This document shows positions 26,064 through 61,800 of a stretch of DNA of 64,000 bases, piece after piece. The DNA is from Cyanophora paradoxa CCMP329 (lineage: Eukaryota; Plantae; Glaucophyta), in contig QPMI01000610.1 in NCBI GenBank assembly GCA_004431415.1, positions 62,001 to 126,000 on the forward strand, given 5' to 3'. Below the pieces are notes generated by a model. It had not been told where the DNA came from. It saw nothing but the letters and a program-made list of their open reading frames with translations, and made no database searches. Made by a program: the position numbers and the translations under genes. The stretch's first letter is position 1. Every line of letters begins with the position of its first letter.

Positions 26064-27173
26064 CGCTGGCAGGCTGCAGCCGCGTGCGCAAGCGATCGAT
26101 ATCACGCTCGCGACTTCATTCGCGATCGATTAGGGAAAGACACTAGTACTGGTCATGCGATCATGACTCAGTGAGACACGATGAACTAAGCTGATGAGCC
26201 CAGGCCTAGGTACCGGTGCGCTGCTGGCAGGCTGTGCACGTGCACGTGGCAGGCGTTCTCGTCGGCAGCGTCGCGGAACGCGAGCGGGGCCTGCGCACGC
26301 GCCGCGTCCGTCATGATCAGAAGCGTTGCGGACGGGGGCCGGGGGCTGCAGCTGGGGCCTCGCCTCGGAAAAGCAGGGCCGGGGGGCCCGGGGTGAGGGG
26401 GAGGGGGGCGCCGGCGGGCAGGGCGCGCGAGCTCGAGAGGGCGCAGCACCTTGGCCTCTTCGAATTCTGTCAAGATATCGATGGCCTTGAAGCGGAATTC
26501 GAAGTTGCAATTGCCCATAAATCGGCTGCGGGGGCCGCCGGGCCGGGGGGTCGGCTGCGGGGGCCGGGGGGTCGGCTGCGGGGGCCGGGTCACCCGGGTG
26601 GCCGGCCCGCGGCGGAATATCGATATCGATTCGAATTCGAATTCGAAATCGAAAAAATTCGGAGCGCACCGCGGCCGGGTACCGGGCTACTACCGGCCAG
26701 CCGTTTTTTTGGTTTCGAATTCGGAGCTCACCAGACTTTTTCCACGGGTCGGGGTACATGCAGGTTGCAGGGGCAGCCCGACGAGTCGACGTCAACGGGC
26801 GCCGCGGTACGCGCGTATATACGCGTGAGCGGCGTGACCCGCTGCGGACTGCAGCCTATGGCTAGGCCTGCAGGTCAGCTGTGCATGCGCGTAGGTTGCA
26901 GCCTACTTGCAGGCAACGTTAACTTAAGCTTGCAGCTGCAGCTGAGGCTGCTGCAGCTGAGCCTTGAGCTAATCACAAGCCTGAGCCTCGGCCCTCGGAG
27001 CGACGTCGACAAGAATGTATTTTGCAGGGCTGCGCACCAGCCCGTTTGGAAAGCGCGTTCGCAGTAACATAGGAGCGGAAGATACTGCAGCTGGCAGTGA
27101 CCCACCGACTCCACCATTGGCACGGCACCTTGGTCGCGAGATCATCGAATATAGCAAGCCACTCGAACCACCC

Positions 27174-29558
27174 ATGGCCACTGCGTCTGTGAAGACTATT
27201 CCCCCTCCAAAAGGATGGGTCTCTATGCCGCAAGGCACGCCCCTGCAAGTTCGTATTACTTACGGCGATTCGGTGCGCTGTTGGTGCAGGAAACGCATCT
27301 TAGAGCTCACTTTGAATTCAGAATGGAACTCGCTAACTTGTACGTATACCTGCGCATGCGCAGAGGTCTGCGAGCGTCGACATGTATACGTTATAGTACT
27401 CGTGCTTCGATATATATAAGTTGAGGCACCCCGACCCTTGCGCAGCTTTTTCACGCAGAAGTCGCTTCCTTTTCCCGTCTACTGCCCAGCGGGGACAAGG
27501 TGCGCGTGCTCGCTGTACGTATACATGTGCAGCTGGTTGCAATTGCTAACGATTAGACGGCGCGGCTGCGAGACAGATGGCTCGCCCAGATAACCGGCAC
27601 CTCGCCATGGCCAGGCCCAGACGATGAGCCTGCCGACAAGATACACTGTTGCGGATCGGCAGACGTTACAGGCAAGCCGCGGGGGACCCACGGGATCATC
27701 CCACCTGTAGTTGTCAAAGGTGTCCCGAATCCGCAGGTGCGGCATGCGCACTGCGGCAGCTGCAGCCTAGGCCTGATCATGAAGCTCCCGGCCGGGCGCC
27801 AACCGCAATTGTACTGCACTAACTTGCACTTGTATTCTGCGGCAGGACGCCCAGGAGGTCGAGCTGGCTTTCAACGAGTCTTGCCAAGAACGTGAGTCGA
27901 CGTCGACGTCGCTGCTAAATATTCCCCCCTGCAGCTGCATGTCATTCATGGCATCTGCGCAGCGCGCCTCGTCAATACGCTGTTCAAAGATCGTTCGGAT
28001 CGGCCGAGCCGTGCGTTCCTCGGCAGGGCGAAGCTCACCGTCTCTCCCGAAGACCACCGGATGCTCGTGCGGATGGCCGAAGAGTGCGCGTCGGCGCCAC
28101 GCGCTCGACTCGCGATTGCAAAATATTCGCGATCGCGAGTTTTGCAAAAACAAACTGATGCCCGAATTTCGCGCAGGCACCAGGAAGAAGTGGAAGAGTA
28201 AGTGATGCGAATTCAGTTGCAATTTCAGATGTCCGTGTAGATCTTGGCATGCGCAATCGTGGGCCGACGCCCGGGCACGCATGCACAGGCGTGCCGAGTA
28301 TGCTTCGATTTCTCAGCGTCAGTTGAACAAAATCAAGGCAATGTATCCATCGCGATTTCTGGTCACCGAGCGGAGCATTGCTACGCCTGCAGCCCCGACG
28401 TCGACGATCGCGGCACCAGCGACGGTCGCAACGGAGGCGCCGGCACCGGCGCTCGCGCCGGCACTCGCGGCCGGTGCAGCGTACGCGTCGGCCATGACTG
28501 CGACTCCAGGTCCAGGCGAGGTGCGCTTATATTTAATTATGCAGAGATAGGTTTTGAATTTCGCCTCATCGATATCAATATTAAAACTGTTTGCTAAACT
28601 CCCGCACTGCTCTCCCAGTCGCGGACTTTTTCTGGGGGATTGGACGACGCCAAACAGGAGGTTCTTACATACATCCGAGCGAACTTCGAGGTGCGCATGC
28701 ATCGATATCGATGTCTGGCCATTGGGATCTATCACGAGACTAACGGAAACTCCAATTGCAATCAGTCGTGGGAAAACCCCAACCGTGGAGGAGCTCTTTC
28801 GTTCGGGCTGTCGCGTATACCGGTTGAAGGTCGGATTCAGCAAGTGTACAGAAGCGATCTATGGCGTGATTTGACCCCTGAACACAAGTCGGCACTGGAG
28901 CCGCTTCTGGAACAGATGGTCATGGAGCCGCCGCCGGCTGCACCCACACCGAAGCTTAAGCCTGCAGCCCCGACGGCGCCGGCCGCGGCAGCAGCGACGG
29001 TCGAAAAGGAGGCTGTGCTCGTGAAACCGACGGTCTCTTTAGGGCGCAATCTACACTTCAAGGAGAACGTGCAGCCTGCCCCGTATGTACCCCTTTTGCC
29101 GACGGGTCGTGCGTGCCTTGGATATCGATGCTGATCATCATCCTGGGCGCAGACCGCCGACTCTCGAGCACTACTTCCTGGACAGGGTGCCCACGGACTC
29201 GTCGGAGTTCGGCGACGGACTTCGAACCGGCCGCATCTTCACGGTCGACGTCCTGGACGCGGGCACGAACCTCGTCGACTCCGACGTCGGCGGCTACGTC
29301 GCCTACTCGAGCGGCGGCGCCGACTGCGGCTTCCCCGCTGACGTCGACGACGACGACGCCTCCCCCGCCGCCGAGGCCCGCCCCGCCCCTCGCATCCGAG
29401 TGCCGCTCATCTAACGGGCGGCGGGCCGGGGACGACAGGGGGAGGAGGGGGTCCTGGGGGAGGCGCTGGGGGCGGAGGGCGAGGGCGAGGGCGCCGCCTT
29501 AAGCTTCGAATTCTCGGACCCGGCGGCCCTCGCCGACCGCCACGCACCGCTCCTCTAG
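27174..29558 (+). CDS. Hypothetical multi-exon protein (lower GC, possibly degenerate)
   Basis: Exon-like blocks flanked by GT/AG and branch motifs, e.g. MATASVKTIPPPKGW..., LHVIHGICAARLVNTLFK..., VYRSDLWRDLTPEHKSALEPLL..., PTLEHYFLDRVP.... No recognisable domain, and the exon phases are not fully resolved. Confidence 0.35.
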
Positions 29559-30462
29559 ATTTCGATCTGGACCCTTTCGACCTTGAAAAGTCATGTTCAT
29601 GATTGGCTATAGGGCCCCGCCGTACGCGTCGGACTAGTATTGGTGTTGAATCATTGAATTTCACGATCAGTCTGGTTTTAGATGTTGACTCTAGAAGCAT
29701 ATCTCTGGCCCAGTGGATCTAGATATGTGACAGTGAGGGAACTCAGGGAAGGTCGCGGGCCCTGAGGAGATCTAGACGCCGTGACGTCGATCGCGACAGC
29801 CTCACATGCGCATGCATATGATCATGATCATGATGCCTGCGCGGCACCGCATGCGCAGCCATTGCAATTGAATCATGGCATTGGCTGTTCGATGGACTTC
29901 GGGAGCTCGAGTGCAACATGCATGCGCAGTGCTAGAAGAATTTCAAACGTGAACCGTGAACCCAAATTGTTTGCAAAAATCGATTGCGATTTGAATTCAT
30001 CGGATCTCAGGATAGTATCACTCAAAATTAGTACACTGAGTCACGCAACTAGTAGGCTACCGAAAGCTAACTAGAAATGATGAAAGCGAGCTGCCTGAAG
30101 CTAGCGTGGAAACGGCCTGTCATGATCACTGTGGACATCGATTGTAAAGCACACTCCGATCAAGAGGAGGCCTCATTAATGTTGTAAAACGGCCTGCCAG
30201 GCTGTCTGTCACTGAGAACATCGGTTGGAAAACACTGGCGATCAAGAGGAAACGAGAGGGTTCGCGCAGAAACGTCCTGGCGAAGGCACTGCGGCGCCAC
30301 GGGATGCACCTGGAAGCACAGGCGCGCGCAAGGCGCGGGGCTGGCCTGCCTCTCTCGCAAGGCGCGGGAAGCTTGACGTCTAGATCTAGATCTCTCTGTG
30401 CAGAAAATGGATACAGTTTTCAAAGAAGGGGGACACTGTGCAGGCTGCTGAGCGGTGGCTGG

Positions 30463-52055: not shown

Positions 52056-54794
<2,739 letters not shown>

Positions 54795-54972: not shown

Positions 54973-55306
54973 CGCGCCGCCGGGCCGGGCCGGGCCGGGG
55001 GCTCGAACGATGATTAACCGGACCGGGCCGGGGCCCGGGGGGCTCGGCACGATCCGTCGGTACCCCTTGATCTCGGTACCCCCTTTGACTGTTATCTCTG
55101 TACCCCGGCACACGAGCTGCAGCTGGCTACTAGCTGCGGATGCAGCACACTGTCTTCGCGCGTCAGGCGGCGCGTCAGGCACTTGGAAGTGATCTGGAGG
55201 ATGCTATGATGCCTGCTAGCTGTTCGGTGATCACTTCTCCGTAGCCCGCCGTCCTCCAGCTGCGCGAGCCGCGCACCTCCGCGCGAAGTGAGCGTCGACG
55301 CGGAAC

Positions 55307-58300
55307 ATGGCGTCCGCGGAGAGTCGAGGTACCACGTTTGACGAGAATGGTCGCCCGGCCGCGGAGTGCCCCGTCTGCTTTCGCCGCTTGCAGGAGCCGG
55401 TGCGCGCGCTCTACCCACGGACTAGGCCGCATAGACGTCCAGCTGACTGCTCCGGATCCTGCGCAGGCGGTCGTGATCTGCTCGAGCGGGCACGCTGTCT
55501 GCCGAAGATGCTCGGATGCTTTGACATACGCGGCGACGCTCAAGTGCCCGGTCGCGGGATGCGGAGAGAAGTGCGTGCGATCAATTACAAGATCTGCGCG
55601 CGGTCGTCATGGCTAGCTGGAGCGCCTGACCGAACGCGTCTCATCGCAGGTTACGAAGCTTGGCAGCTGCAGCTGACACGCATGACCAGCTGCAGGCCAG
55701 TTCCCTATCCCTCGAGCTCGCCTCCCAAGCCCCACCTGTGCAACATACCGCGAGTGCCTCGAGCTCCTCCGCCGCTCTGGTTCGGATATCGATATCGTTC
55801 CTTTTCCGCTGGTCTGCGCTCTACATCCTGATCGACCGCTCACAGAATAACGACCAGCTCTGTGCTCTAGGAGACCCACGGCTCTGGACGGAGGACGACG
55901 TCGCAACGTGGATTCGTCAGCTGGGAAAAGTGTCCAAGTGCGCTCTTTCGAGCTTCTAGAATATCGAGCTCTCCGTTCGCGCCCAGGCCACGGGATCTGG
56001 GCGAACGAACAAACATATGCTTATAATTAGTCACTCGGCAGGTTTGTGGACCATTTCGAATTCACGAACGGCCGCGCGCTGCTGGAACTCAGCGAAGCCG
56101 ACCTGAAGGAGATGGGCATCGAGCCCCACGGCGCGCGCCAGCGACTCATGGTCGACATCAACAGCCTGAAAAGAGCTCACGCCTCCGATCATTTCCGAGC
56201 TCACAGCGACAGCGCTAGCCCTGCGCATCCTCGAGTGACCCCGGGCCCACTTCTATTTGGGGATCTGGCCTCGAGCTCGAGCTCGGCCGCGGATGGCAAG
56301 CGCTGGGATGCTTTTGTTAGGTAACTCACCAAGTTTTAAGACATCTCTTAAACTCTTGAACTCATAAACATCCCGTACGCGTGTCAGTTATGCGCACAAG
56401 GACCAAGACAAAGTTCTTCGATATGTCACCCTGATGGAGCATGCAGGGATTTCGGTTTGGTGTGCTGTCTTTTGCGCCCGATCGGCTTTTTTTCCGCGCG
56501 CATCATGAAAGTGACCTATAGCTATCTGCCTTATTTCGCAGGATCGACCGGGAGCTTAGAGCTGGGAGGCCGTGGATGCCGGTAAGCTTCGAACTTCTGT
56601 TCCCCTATCATGACCATGAGATTATAATTACTTGCGTTGACTTTGCTAACGATCATGATTCTGATCAGGAAATCGCTCAAGCAATGGTGAACAGCTGGGC
56701 CTTCGTCGTGTTTCTTTCTCCGGCCTACTTCGATTCTCGGAACTGCGACGACGAGTTCCAGGTGCCTGCTTCGAGCTCGAGCCCGCGACCGCAGCCGTCC
56801 TGAGCTAAGAACGCTGCCGTCCTGCTCTTGCGGTCGCTTACAGTCGCTCCCGATCGAACTCGCAGTACGCGCACCACGTGCTGCGGATGCCGAAGTACCC
56901 CGTGTGGCTCAAGCCCCCGGCCTCGTGCACAAAATACCAGCAGCTACGCGACTACCAGTGCGCGCGTCTCTTTTGAAATCATAGCCAGGCGATCGCGATC
57001 ACTTAACATGTAGACTGACTCGGCTTGGTCTTTGGTTTGCAGCATGATGCTCACGAAGGAGGGCTGGACCGTCCAGAAGGATGATCGCGATGCCTCCGTG
57101 GAGGAAGCGGCCGCGTTTCTAATACGCGGACTTGTCGAGAACCTGCGCCTGAGCCAAGCAGCTGCAGCGTCAAGCCAGGCACAGATGCATGGTGCCTTCG
57201 TGTTGACGTGCTCTTTGAACCGCGGCTGCTTCGTTTTGATCTTGAACAGACTCAAGCGCTAGCGCTAGCGCCGCGACAGTGGCACAAGAACTGCTGGTGA
57301 AGTCGACACATGCACAGGGCCCAGTTGCAAGCTCCGAAGTAGCGACACAGGCGCCGGCAGTAGGAGGATCCGGACTGACACAAGCGCCGGCGGTAGGATC
57401 ACCAACACAGGCGCCGGCGCCACATGCATGTGGCAGTGACGGTGGAGACTCGGCAAGCGCTGCAGACGTCGATATCGTGCAGCTCGTTTTCCGAGCACAG
57501 GCGGCCCGTGCCACCTTGGACTGCCGAAGCGACGAGAAGATGCTCGAGGTCCTGTCTCGAGCGAAGGAAGCGCTGGGTTGCGCCGTCTTGACGCCGGTAT
57601 GCGCTGTTAACTTGGAGATGTGGACCCTTGGTCTATTGGAAATTGATTTCTCTTTTCCGTTGCAGCAAAACATCCGTCTAGTGAGGCGTGGCGAAAGGAG
57701 CTATCCCCACATTTGCTACGAAATAGTCAGACATCAAGCAAGCCAAACGGTCGCTCAAGCCGGGCTTCAGACTGGCTGCGAGATTTTCGTGTCGGTTCAA
57801 ATTGAATCAAAGGATCAACCATCGCAAAGTTCGACTCTTCCTCATCATACTCTCTCACACAGCTTCCCTCATTTTAACGGCGCCGCGTCCAGGCGCGGAA
57901 CCCGAACCTGCCTCCATCCCCGCATCAGCTCCAACCTTGCAGTCGGAAACTCTAGAGTGCTCGAGCAGCTTGGCAGTGGTTCGACTGGAACCTGTCGAGG
58001 AGTTTGTGCCTGTCGACGGCGAAGACCCGGATGTCGCGTTGTCTCGGCTCGCCAAGGCGCGAAGGTGGCAGCGGTGCCCCCAGTGCAGGATGTACATCAT
58101 CAACGATGGCGGCTGCAACCACATGCGCTGCACCGTGCGTGTTGTCACTGCAATCGCGACAGCCATCTGGATCTGACGTGCCCCATCCGATTCTGTAGTG
58201 CGGAACGGAGTTCTGTTACACGTGCGGGGTTCGTGTCCTCGTTTGTCTCCGGGCTTGCACCCTCCGGATCCCCGCAGCTGCCGCGTGGTCTCTGATCGCC

Positions 58301-58458
58301 CTCTCGCCGTTGGCCGTGTGCAGGAGGGTTTCTCATCAAGCCACGACGGCTGCTGGGAAGGGAACACGGCTCAATGCCGGCATTGGAGCCATCACTTCTC
58401 TGCAGCGCACCCGTTGTTCACAGAGGCCGTTTTAATGCGCATGCAGGACCTCGCTTAA
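55307..58458 (+). CDS. RING - SAM - TIR - ubiquitin-like - RING2 (RBR Rcat) multidomain protein
   Basis: RING CPVC...CSSGHAVCRRC...CPVAGC. SAM WTEDDVATWIRQLG...NGRALLELSEADLKEMGI..HGARQRL. TIR DAFV|SYAHKD...GISVW|ID.ELRAG..W..|EIAQAM...FVVFLSPAYFDSRNCDDEF. Ubl-like ...QNIRLV...TVAQAGLQTGCEIFV. Rcat WQRCPQC...DGGCNHMRCT|CGTEFCYTCG. TAA at 58458. Confidence 0.85.
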
Positions 58459-58528
58459 GATTCGAGGTCTTCGAGCGAGCTCGAGATTACGCTATTCTGA
58501 GCTGAGCTATTCTACATATGCATAGCTA

Positions 58529-58740
58529 GCTAGCCTCGCAGCGTAGGACCAGCCTACCTCCTTGGTCCTTCTGCTTCCCTCCACCGTGGCACACGTGCAC
58601 CCCTTATATTACGCACCAACCCCCGCCTGGCCCGTGGCCTCCTAGGGCCTCGCTTCTCCATGCCTCGGAAGCGAGGAGCAGAGTTTTTGTTTTAAAATGT
58701 ACAAGAATATCAATTTCGAAATTCATTTCGCGCACCATCC
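58529..58740 (+). repeat. Copy B of the IMPDH 3'-flank direct repeat, expanded by short palindromic insertions
   Basis: Collinear with 54821-54972 but about 60 nt longer. Confidence 0.85.
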
Positions 58741-58888
58741 TCCGGGCTGGGCGGGGGGAAACTCGAGGATAAAAAAGTTGGGGCGCGGAGCACGAAGCCC
58801 TACCCTAGAATTCAATATAAATAACAATCACGCAAGAGTGGCACAAAGCGAAGCAGAGGGGAGGGGGGGCGCGGGGGCGGGGCCGGCC

Positions 58889-61800
58889 TCAGTAGAAGTC
58901 GCACTCGAAGAAGAACTTGGCGGCGACGCGCGGGCTCAGGTGCAGCGCCTCCAGCAGCGCCACGTGCGCTGGCCCCGCCCCTCAGCGCCCGCCGGGGCGG
59001 GGCGGGGCGGGGCTGGCGGGGCGGGGCGGGGGCGGACCGTGCGGGGAGAGGTTCCCCCCGAGGAGGTCGAGCTCCTCGAGCGCCGGCGACTCCGCCACGC
59101 CCTGCGCCCCGCCTCAGCCCCGCGGCGGGCGGCCCGGGCGGGCGGGGCGGGCCTTGGCGAGGGCGCGGCCCTCGTCGTCGCGGAGCTGGGCGCCGCGGAG
59201 GCGGAGGGAGCGGAGGGAGCGGGAGCGCGCGAGGGCGCCCGCCAGCTCCCGCGCCCCTGCGCCGACACCACCCGCGCGTCCAGCGCCAGCTCCTGCAGCG
59301 CCGCCGCCTCCCCCGCCGCCCCGCCACCGCCGCGAACACTGCCCCCGCCCCCCGCTCGACCCGCCCCGCGCCCGGCGAGGGGCGGGCGGGGCGCACGGGC
59401 GGGGCGGGGTTGCCCTCGAGGTTGAGGTGCGTGAGGGTCGCGTTCCGCCGCAGCGCCGCCGCCGCCACGCCGGCCACTGCGCGCGGGGCGTCGGTGCAGG
59501 GCGCGGGGGCGGGGCGGGGGCGGGGCGGGCCGTCGTCGGTGAGGCCGTTGGAGGCGAGGTCGAGCTTCCGCAGGCCGCCGTTCTGCCCCAGCGCCTCCAG
59601 AAGCGCCCCGCACCCTGCCCCCGTCAGCCGCGCCGGGCGGGGCGGGGCGGCCGGGGCGGGCGCCTGGGGCCCGAGGCCGCAGTCGGCGAGGAGCAGCTCC
59701 TGCAGGCTCCGGTTCCGCGCCAGGAACGCCCCGAACGCCGGCTCCGGCGGCGCCCCTGCCCCCGCCTCAGCGGCGCGGGCGCGGGCGCGGGGCGGCGGGG
59801 CGGGGCGGGGCGGGCCGGAGCGGTCGGGCCCGAGGCTGTTCTTGGAGAGGCGGAGGGTGCGCAGGGCGGTGTTCTGCTGGAGTGCCTGGGCGAGGCCGGC
59901 GGCGCCGCGGGCGGAGATGCCGGAGTTGACGAGGGAGAGGCACGTGAGGGCGCGGTTCCCCGCCAGGTGCTCCCCCCCGGCGCCTCCACTGCCGCCCCGC
60001 TCGCCCCGCGCCGCGCGGGCCGGGGCGGGGCGGGGCGGCGGGCACCGTTCTGGCCGTCGAGCTCGAGGGTCTGGAGGGCGGCGTTGGAGCGGAGGGCGCG
60101 CAGGAGGGCCTGGCACCCCGCCGACTCCACCCTGCGCCCCCTCAGCCGCTGGCGGCGGGCGGAGGGGCGGGGCGGCGCGCTTGACGCGGTCGATGGACTT
60201 GGAGAGGGCGAGGCGGCGGAGGCTCCGGTTCTGCTCGAGGGCGCGCGCCAGGGCCGCCGCCCCCCGGTCCCCCACCCGGTTCTCCGACAGGTCCAGCACC
60301 TGCGCCCCGCTCGCCGCGCGCGGGGCGCGGGCGGGGCGGGGCGGGGCGGGGCGGGGGGCGGGCCTCGAGGACGGCGTTCTGCTCGAGGGCCTGGGCGACC
60401 CACTGGACGCCGTCGTCGTTGAACTTGTTGCCGCAGAGCACGAGCTCCCGCAGGCTCCCGTGCGACGCCAGCGGGCCCGCCAGCCGCCGCAGCCCTGCGC
60501 AGGCCGCTCGATCCGCCGCGTGGACTTGGCCGGGGCGGGCGGGGGGGCGGGGACCGTCGTTGGTGAGGAAGGTGCTCTCGAGGGAGAGGACGGCGAGCGT
60601 GCGCGAGTTCGCCAGCACGTCCGCCACCTCCTGCAGGCCTGCCCGCCCGCGCCGCGGCGCCCCGTAAGCGAGAGGAGCCGGCGCCGGAGCGGCGGTGGGC
60701 GGCGGGCCCCGCGCACCCTCGTCGTAGAGCTCGTTGTTGGCGAGGTCGAGGCGGGTGAGGGTGCGGTGGGCGCGCAGCCCGCCGCAGAGCCCCTGCCCCG
60801 CCCCTCAGAGGGAAGAAAGAGAGCGGGGCGGGGGGGGGGGGGGGGGGGGGAGGGGGGGGGGGGGGGCGGGCCTGGATGCCGGAGAGGTCGTAGACGGCGA
60901 ACTCGTCGTCCTCGTCGTCCGTCGCCTCCCCGCTGCGCCCCGCCGGCTCAGCGCCGAGGGCTGAGCTGGGCAGGGCCGGGGAGGGCCGCCACGCGCCTGG
61001 TGTCGTCGTGCGGCTCCTCCCCGTACTCGGGAGCCGCCGCCATCACCTTCATCGCCGTGTTGTGCCTTCCCCCACACCCGAGTCGGCGGCGGGTGCGGGC
61101 GGGGGGCGGGGCGGGGGCGGGGCGGGGGCGGGTGCGGCGCACAGGTTGGGCTGCGACATGCGGCGGAGGGTCTGGCGGACGGAGAGCTCCGAGACGGACG
61201 TGATCGTCGAGAGCGTCGCCACGAAGTCTGAGGGGGGGAGATGAGGAAGCTGAGCGCGAGAGGGGAAGGGGCGGGGGCGGGGGCGGGGGCGGGCCCTTCA
61301 TGTTCTGGAGGCGCTTGAGGACGGCGCGGGTGTCGGTGCGGGCGCGGAGCTCGCGGATGTGCTTCGAGATGCACTCCGCCAGGATCCGGTCGAAGTCGTC
61401 GTCCAGGCCCCGGTCCACCTGGGGCAGACGATCAGAGGGACGATCGGGTGAAGGAGAGGGAAGGGAGGACCATGGCGGCCCAGTCGATGGCGTTCATCTC
61501 GTCGCGCACGCGCTCCGCCACGGCGTCCGCGTCGGCGCCCTCGTGCCGCCCCCCCGCCTTCTGGCCCGCCCCCAGCGACCCCGCCTCCCGGTGGCCCGAC
61601 GGGCCGGTCCCCGGCAGCGCGGGGGCCCCCTTCCGCGACTTGGCTGCGGGGGCGAGGGAGGAAGCTCAGGGGAGCCGCCGAGCGCGGGGGAGGCGGGGCG
61701 GGGCGGGCCGATGTGGTTGTTGCGGAGGAGGAGCGTCTGGAGGCCGCTGTTGGAGCGCAGCGCCTCCCCCAGCGCCTCCGCCCCTGCGCGGCAGCAGGGC

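Follow-up and report, generated by a model that had tools for sequence, protein, structure and literature searches.

A putative RING-SAM-TIR-Rcat ubiquitin ligase encoded by a single expressed gene in the glaucophyte Cyanophora paradoxa

TIR domains and RBR-type ubiquitin ligases both hold central positions in the innate immunity of animals, plants, and bacteria, but they normally occur in separate proteins linked by adaptors. In animals, the RING protein TRAF6 works downstream of TIR receptors. Canonical RINGs discharge E2 directly. SARM1, an NAD+ hydrolase with an ARM-SAM-SAM-TIR arrangement, carries a SAM domain immediately before a TIR domain with a glutamate and has no ligase parts. Parkin and HOIL-1 are RBRs with an N-terminal ubiquitin-like domain, which in parkin regulates the ligase. 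The defining feature of RBRs as a class is a contiguous RING-IBR-RING supradomain (PMC2904391).

Here, we have analyzed a gene in a 64,000-nucleotide stretch of the Cyanophora paradoxa CCMP329 genome (contig QPMI01000610.1, positions 62,001 to 126,000; hereafter the window), whose predicted product combines parts of these systems. Like SARM1, it has a SAM domain followed by a TIR domain, but it has a single SAM and no ARM domain and, unlike SARM1, it also carries a RING and an RBR-type RING2 (Rcat). This combination of RING, SAM, TIR, and Rcat was found in no other protein in database searches, and literature searches returned nothing relevant on TIR fused to IBR, RBR, or SAM, or on TIR in glaucophytes.

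Gene structure and expression

To obtain the splice joints, RNA contigs from four runs, each belonging to a different study, were aligned to positions 55100-58700 of the window. All 14 introns are of the GT..AG type and 58-104 nt long, and the joined exons form an open frame of 2061 nt that encodes 686 aa (Table 1). The start codon is the first in-frame ATG downstream of an in-frame stop, and this ATG and the stop codon agree exactly with the coordinates proposed in the initial annotation of the sequence. One contig of approximately 2.48 kb spans nearly the whole transcribed region in each of X2 (55106-58683), X6 (55111-58625), and X9 (55114-58688), which come from three studies. The cDNA confirmation that had been called for is provided by these contigs, which place the RING, the SAM-TIR part, and the Rcat on a single spliced transcript and contradict both a distribution of the domains over separate transcripts and a lack of expression. 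In addition, about half of the sampled words of the gene, the proportion expected for its spliced form, are present in each of at least 14 runs, which belong to 8 studies. The gene is, therefore, a single expressed, spliced, and intact gene.

The database gene model (P0001) is 62 aa shorter than the 686-aa form, the difference being a low-complexity piece of exon 11, whereas the RNA contigs run uninterrupted across this exon (57249-57595). Whole-protein searches reported below used P0001, which had been retrieved with a query reading through exons 11 and 12, and the exons were also searched one by one. No inverted repeats were detected in 58400-58900 (seed 9, length 14).

Table 1. Features of the Cyanophora paradoxa gene, in positions of the window
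Feature	Position	Strand	Details	Basis
Transcribed span	55106-58688	+	5' UTR from ~55106, 3' UTR to ~58688	spliced contigs
Coding span, 15 exons	55307-58458	+	ATG to last base of stop codon	RNA contig joints
Exons 1-5	55307-55399, 55467-55570, 55650-55779, 55846-55937, 56042-56320	+		
Exons 6-10	56388-56459, 56542-56581, 56669-56761, 56866-56957, 57043-57191	+		
Exons 11-15	57250-57596, 57666-57828, 57893-58134, 58199-58228, 58324-58458	+		
C3HC4 RING finger	55367-55562	+	exons 1-2, aa 21-63	Sina_RING, zf-RING_UBOX
Single SAM domain	55873-56180	+	exons 4-5, aa 119-186	SAM_1
TIR domain	56298-57151	+	exons 5-10, aa 226-368	TIR_2
Glu299 codon	56753-56755	+	motif SRNCDDEF	alignment to NADase TIRs
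Low-complexity piece	57297-57482	+	exon 11, in frame, 186 nt	in RNA contigs, cut from P0001
Orphan middle domain, possibly ubiquitin-like	57465-57806	+	exons 11-12	feature search lead only
RBR-type RING2/Rcat finger	58066-58353	+	exons 13-15	IBR, IBR_1 profiles
Presumed catalytic Cys codon	58114-58116	+	GGCNHMRC; Cys626 in 686-aa form, Cys564 in P0001	

The gene had been described as lower in GC than its surroundings, and at 58.1%, versus 71.3% for the whole window, the GC content of its span is indeed among the bottom 2% of stretches of equal size. GC3 is 0.67, whereas the final exon of the upstream neighbor, a housekeeping gene, reaches 0.89; so low a value would suit a gene that is young or only weakly expressed.

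Ligase fingers and the region between them

The N-terminal RING anticipated from the sequence is present. All eight ligands of the C3HC4 pattern were detected (C21, C24, C36, H40, C43, C46, C58, and C63), and both Sina_RING (32.2 bits versus a cut-off of 29.3, with the N-terminus scanned alone) and zf-RING_UBOX (25.5 bits versus 25.2) scored above their cut-offs. In the PDB search, the closest match was SIAH1 (E = 2.8e-5), followed by TRAF6 (3.9e-4), with TRIM also near, whereas RING1 of HOIL-1 reached an E-value of 0.14 only. By sequence comparison, this RING is closer to those of SIAH and TRAF6 than to the RING1 of RBRs, although its last ligand pair lies in a CPVAGC ending that we regard as reminiscent of RING1. 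Although the RINGs of SIAH1 and TRAF6 are its best matches, the protein has neither the zinc fingers of SIAH/TRAF nor a substrate-binding or TRAF-C domain after its RING.

The C-terminal finger has a complete Cys/His pattern that fits RING2 spacing, and its assignment as an RBR RING2 with a GGCNHMRC cysteine is borne out by the IBR profile (31.7 bits on P0001 and 33.9 bits in a further scan; cut-off 24.3), by the IBR_1 profile (33.1 bits, above cut-off), and by alignment with RING2 of ARIH1. The latter is the top PDB match (E = 4.8e-6) and scores higher than the IBR of ARIH1 (approximately 23 versus 15 bits), and the signature also aligns with RING2 of parkin, RNF216, HOIL-1, and HOIP. Cys626 is aligned with the GGCNHM cysteine of the Ariadne-1/ARIH1 RING2, which is the catalytic Cys357 of ARIH1.

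The protein thus resembles Ariadne-type RBRs (ARIH1/HHARI) in its RING2/Rcat spacing and GGCNHM cysteine, but it differs from them in that it lacks an IBR, its two fingers are approximately 540 residues apart, and its RING is nearer to SIAH1/TRAF6. The lack of an IBR, noted from the beginning, holds under closer inspection: the sole IBR-type match in P0001 is the Rcat itself, and just scattered single cysteines occur between aa 63 and 551 of P0001. A hidden IBR was considered and rejected: paired cysteines are missing from the region between RING and Rcat, and with no intron longer than 104 nt, there is no room for a hidden IBR exon. An IBR-less arrangement with approximately 540 residues between RING and Rcat is not known to support a RING-to-Rcat relay.

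The proposal that a ubiquitin-like domain precedes the Rcat fared less well. The middle domain had no match in either Pfam or PDB at E-values up to 10, and a search among 1.84 billion representatives found only the domain itself. The one lead is a weak language-model signal: in the atlas feature search, the sole named clusters were ubiquitin/Rad60-SLD at 0.87-0.88, under the 0.9 level. AlphaFold without an alignment gave unusable models for both the middle domain (all-helical, pLDDT 53.5) and the whole protein (pLDDT 36.8). If the domain is ubiquitin-like, the protein would resemble parkin and HOIL-1 in having a Ubl and an Rcat in one chain, but with the Ubl just before the Rcat rather than at the N-terminus.

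The SAM-TIR cassette and its relatives

A complete TIR domain directly after a SAM domain, as originally reported, was recovered with profiles above the Pfam curated cut-offs. On P0001, SAM_1 scored 39.9 bits (5.7e-10; cut-off 23) and SAM_2 31.9 bits (cut-off 20.5), and the nearest SAM domains in PDB were those of DGK-delta, SARM1 (its SAM1), polyhomeotic, ANKS6, and BICC1. TIR_2 scored 69.5 bits (4.6e-19; cut-off 28), and the PADLOC SAVED_TIR model matched over its full length (aa 229-370). PDB matches of the TIR included TLR15/2, TRR-2, Cat1, and RPV1/RUN1, and the TIR is closer in sequence to TLR, Cat1, and plant TIRs (1e-5) than to the SARM1 TIR chains, which were far behind (0.03-0.08). 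The conserved TIR glutamate is retained as Glu299, which in the alignment corresponds to the "DEL" glutamate of Cat1, RPV1, and TLR15/2, whereas the Glu-4 position, Trp in other TIRs (W638 in SARM1), is occupied by Asn295. SARM1 W638A is among the mutants whose kcat is reduced about 100- to 400-fold (PMC8266388).

The description of this module as SARM1-like is, therefore, correct for the order of SAM and TIR but not for the remaining features, namely the single SAM, the lack of an ARM match in the Pfam scan of P0001, the weak match to the SARM1 TIR, and the replacement of W638 by Asn. The TIR may also cleave NAD+, since Glu299 is intact; a weak or purely scaffolding TIR appears about as likely, considering the Trp-to-Asn change.

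The only relative found is P0002 (EukProt tig00000654_g2808.t1), another Cyanophora paradoxa protein, which contains LRR, SAM, and TIR domains (with LRR_4 and LRR_8 matches). Across 272 columns, the two cassettes are 40% identical (147 bits, E = 1e-43, 95% of the region covered). They are clearly homologous, and the Asn at the Glu-4 position as well as the C-terminal helices of the TIR are among their common features. In P0002, LRRs form the N-terminal part and the TIR is the last domain, whereas the putative ligase, in which the Pfam scan of P0001 found no LRR, has the RING in the place of the LRRs and the orphan domain and Rcat after the TIR. An LRR-SAM-TIR paralogue also carries this cassette, which makes the initially suggested role in immunity or cell death plausible.

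Word-index searches with P0001 (whole, residues 112-372, and residues 520-624) returned P0001, P0002, and one TIR-TRADD-N metagenome protein only; they cover proteins of 343-1092 aa with shared exact words, such that their blanks are weak evidence. No usable match came from an atlas search in which the whole protein was the query. No orthologue in other organisms was found in the word-index searches and the search of 1.84 billion representatives, and conservation, therefore, cannot vouch for the function of this putative ligase.

Possible function and its implications

Considering its domain content, we infer, with about as much confidence as doubt, that the gene encodes a Cyanophora-specific chimeric oligomerizing E3 ligase that would dock to or co-assemble with SAM-TIR receptors and that may, in addition, cleave NAD+. 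Such a protein would combine a SIAH/TRAF-like RING, the SAM-TIR cassette of the LRR-SAM-TIR family, an orphan and maybe ubiquitin-like domain, and an RBR-type Rcat. The closest matches of its SAM domain are SAMs that form polymers, and this domain would, together with the TIR, drive self-assembly or co-assembly with LRR-SAM-TIR receptors via like-with-like contacts. The RING would recruit a ubiquitin-loaded E2, ubiquitin would be passed to Cys626 as a thioester, either within one chain or between neighbors in the oligomer, and it would finally reach either the partners in the assembly or the targets of these partners. However, the RING and Rcat may not cooperate, because canonical RINGs, which discharge E2 directly, are the closest matches of this RING. 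A more specific version, which we consider quite unlikely, is an IBR-less split RBR-like ligase whose RING and Rcat would meet only upon SAM/TIR polymerization, so that ubiquitination would read out TIR assembly and might be coupled to NAD+ cleavage or to ubiquitination of the ADP-ribose product made by the TIR; if true, it would represent a direct one-chain link between TIR signaling and ubiquitination.

A different emphasis, possible but clearly short of probable, is that the protein acts mainly as an effector that cleaves NAD+ in the manner of SARM1 or plant TIRs, activated by SAM oligomerization, and that RING and Rcat would serve only for regulation, such as self-ubiquitination and turnover. 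The complete TIR with its full-length SAVED_TIR match, the alignment of Glu299 with the glutamates of Cat1 and RPV1, and the SARM1-like position of the SAM all point in this direction, whereas the loss of Trp at Glu-4, the weak match to the SARM1 TIR (E = 0.03), and the single SAM without an ARM sensor argue against it. It is unlikely that the gene is a young exon-shuffled chimera without selected function, kept intact by its youth as a by-product of an expanding SAM-TIR family. Such an origin would be consistent with the very large protein sets yielding one paralogous cassette and no orthologue, with the GC3 difference from the neighboring housekeeping gene, with the orphan middle domain, and with the retention of intron 1 in one low-depth contig. 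Nevertheless, all 15 exons are in frame, the eight RING ligands, the Rcat Cys/His pattern and cysteine, and the TIR Glu are intact, and the spliced form occurs in runs of eight studies; moreover, 40% identity to P0002 implies that the fusion is not very recent and that the frame has stayed open through this divergence. That a RING-SAM-TIR gene and a Ubl-Rcat gene were wrongly joined is highly improbable. The long low-complexity linker in exon 11, where P0001 differs by 62 aa, might suggest a boundary, but exon 11 itself connects both halves, and the two-gene reading is rejected by the single contigs of X2, X6, and X9, which connect all exons between 55106 and 58688 without an in-frame stop.

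The chain of RING, SAM-TIR, and Rcat would provide a compact test case for whether TIR/SAM oligomerization can switch on a thioester-forming ligase, and it raises the question of whether an Rcat works without an IBR. Glaucophytes, to which Cyanophora paradoxa belongs, lie near the base of the plant kingdom, and the oligomerizing ligase proposed here is likely a downstream or regulatory arm of the large LRR-SAM-TIR receptor family of this alga.

Transcript, gene model and composition

The coding pieces of the gene switch frames along the stretch in a six-frame reading, and about half of its sampled words were present in at least 14 runs from eight studies of the same organism, which is the expected yield of spliced RNA; three further runs containing 86-100% of the words are probably genomic. 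For splice mapping, contigs from four public runs (X1, X2, X6 and X9, each from a different study) were aligned on window 55100-58700. All 14 joints in the gene proved to be GT..AG, and a single contig of ~2.48 kb spans ~55106 to 58688 in each of X2, X6 and X9. Joined in this way, the gene comprises 15 coding exons separated by introns of 58-104 nt; the start ATG at 55307 follows an in-frame stop, and an open frame of 2061 nt, whose stop codon ends at 58458, encodes 686 aa. Based on these contig-derived joints, the ATG and the open frame, the initial annotation had the limits 55307-58458 exactly right and a single transcript carries every domain. Intron 1 (55400-55466, 67 nt, frame-breaking) is retained in one low-depth X1 contig and spliced in X2, X6 and X9.

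Exons were also searched individually, with the exon 11/12 region queried as a stop-free read-through including the in-frame intron 11. Among 1.84 billion representative proteins, this query had a single match, P0001, which is EukProt model tig00021348_g20536.t1; 'tig000...' names belong to the gene models published for Cyanophora paradoxa (10.1101/674762). P0001 and the exon translations agree everywhere but in exon 11, where the model takes out an in-frame GT..AG piece of 186 nt (57297-57482), a low-complexity segment with TQAPAVG-type repeats. Every aligned RNA contig keeps this piece; the shorter form in P0001 is an artefact of the model or, alternatively, a rare isoform.

The GC content of the window is 71% and that of the gene's flanks 80-86%, whereas the gene span falls within the lowest 2% of equal-sized windows and its GC3 is below that of the upstream gene, in agreement with the lower GC first noticed. 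This is consistent with a gene that is young, expressed at a low level or evolving fast, and does not point to a foreign origin, since the gene has 14 ordinary introns. A second low-GC stretch (27000-30000, 56-60% vs 71% for the window) has no long open reading frame. Upstream, a 193-bp unit (2.5 copies, 99% identity, 53976-54462) lies within the IMP-dehydrogenase-like gene (+), probably in an intron. Directly downstream and convergent is an RNI-type leucine-rich-repeat coding region (58812-60716, -; 80-85% GC). A palindrome-forming insertion had been proposed at 58529-58740, overlapping the 3' UTR; no inverted repeat was found in 58400-58900 (seed 9, length 14).

Composition and domains of the gene (residues refer to P0001)
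Feature	Location	Strand	Value
Coding sequence			GC 60%
Third codon positions			GC3 0.67
Introns			GC 54%
Last exon, upstream IMP-dehydrogenase-like gene			GC3 0.89
Sina_RING (N-terminus scanned alone)	residues 21-52		32.2 bits, Pfam curated cut-off 29.3
SAM_1	residues 122-183		39.9 bits, Pfam curated cut-off 23
TIR_2	residues 231-317		69.5 bits, Pfam curated cut-off 28
Orphan middle domain	~57465-57806	+	beta-grasp look by eye
IBR	residues 542-587		31.7 bits, Pfam curated cut-off 24.3

Domains of the encoded protein

The N-terminal RING is present, scoring above its cut-off and having eight ligands (C21, C24, C36, H40, C43, C46, C58 and C63). Its closest solved structures are SIAH1 (2.8e-5), then TRAF6 and TRIM fingers; RING1 of the RBR protein HOIL-1 reached an E of only 0.14. 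The C-terminal finger (C-x2-C-x9-C-x-H-x2-C-x-C-x4-C-x2-C) also exceeds its cut-off, under the IBR model. Its top PDB matches are RBR ligases throughout, with the displayed alignments landing on their RING2, and it scores ~23 bits to ARIH1 RING2 vs ~15 bits to ARIH1 IBR. GGCNHM is retained, with its cysteine at Cys564 in P0001 (Cys626 in the 686-aa form), as in the RBR RING2/Rcat that had been proposed. Between residues 63 and 551 of P0001 only scattered single Cys and no pairs occur, and since all introns are <=104 nt, they are too short for a hidden exon; the IBR is thus absent, as initially seen. The RBR family is defined by a contiguous RING-IBR-RING supradomain (PMC2904391), and this protein is not a member of the family so defined.

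The chain has one SAM, matching DGK-delta, polyhomeotic and SARM1 types. The TIR is complete (residues 229-370 covered by the PADLOC TIR-SAVED model) and retains the conserved Glu: Glu299 occupies the alignment column of the 'DEL' Glu in Cat1, RPV1 and TLR15/2. Four residues earlier it has Asn, whereas these proteins and SARM1 (W638) have Trp; P0002, a Cyanophora LRR-SAM-TIR paralogue, likewise has Asn. Because W638A is among the SARM1 mutants whose kcat falls ~100- to 400-fold (PMC8266388), NADase activity is possible and not safely predicted. The mosaic described in the initial annotation is confirmed, apart from its ubiquitin-like domain, and its interpretation is supported in part: 'SARM1-like' holds for the SAM-then-TIR order and not for TIR sequence, which is nearer to TLR, Hydra TRR-2, Cat1 and plant TIRs (E ~1e-5) than to SARM1 (E 0.03). 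The protein is not a SARM1 orthologue.

The middle domain had no match in Pfam or PDB, even at E 10, and no relatives among 1.84 billion representative proteins. AlphaFold without an alignment gave pLDDT values too poor for use (36.8 for the whole protein, 53.5 for this domain). In a language-model feature search, ubiquitin and Rad60-SLD were the only named families among 30 matches, in clusters scoring 0.87-0.88, a level that the tool counts as no more than a lead; the domain may be ubiquitin-like.

Relatives and possible function

Whole-protein and Rcat-part searches, covering proteins of 343-1092 aa that have exact words in common with the query, returned only the protein itself. The SAM-TIR part matches P0002 (EukProt tig00000654_g2808.t1; 147 bits, 40% identity, 95% of the region), in which an LRR precedes SAM and TIR and nothing follows the TIR, whereas here SAM-TIR is set within ligase parts. 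By this homology, the gene reuses the SAM-TIR cassette of the LRR-SAM-TIR family. A literature search found no TIR fused to IBR or Rcat parts, and the protein combines known modules in a new way, so far in one species only.

The gene encodes an intact, expressed chain in which a RING is followed by a single SAM, a complete TIR that retains the Glu, the orphan domain and an Rcat that retains the Cys. The bridging contigs contradict an artefact of two genes, which is extremely improbable. A young chimera without selected function, with which the low GC would be compatible, appears unlikely. Somewhat more probable, and still doubtful, is that the protein is primarily an NADase effector with the ligase parts as regulators; it has the conserved Glu, together with Asn at the SARM1 W638 position.

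RINGs bind ubiquitin-loaded E2, Rcat cysteines accept ubiquitin in a thioester bond, SAMs of the DGK-delta, polyhomeotic and SARM1 types assemble into polymers or rings, and TIRs act by self-association. Considering this family knowledge, there is an even chance that the protein is an oligomerising E3 ligase, in which ubiquitin would be relayed from RING to Rcat within one chain or between chains, and like-with-like SAM and TIR contacts would allow it to dock to, or co-assemble with, LRR-SAM-TIR receptors.
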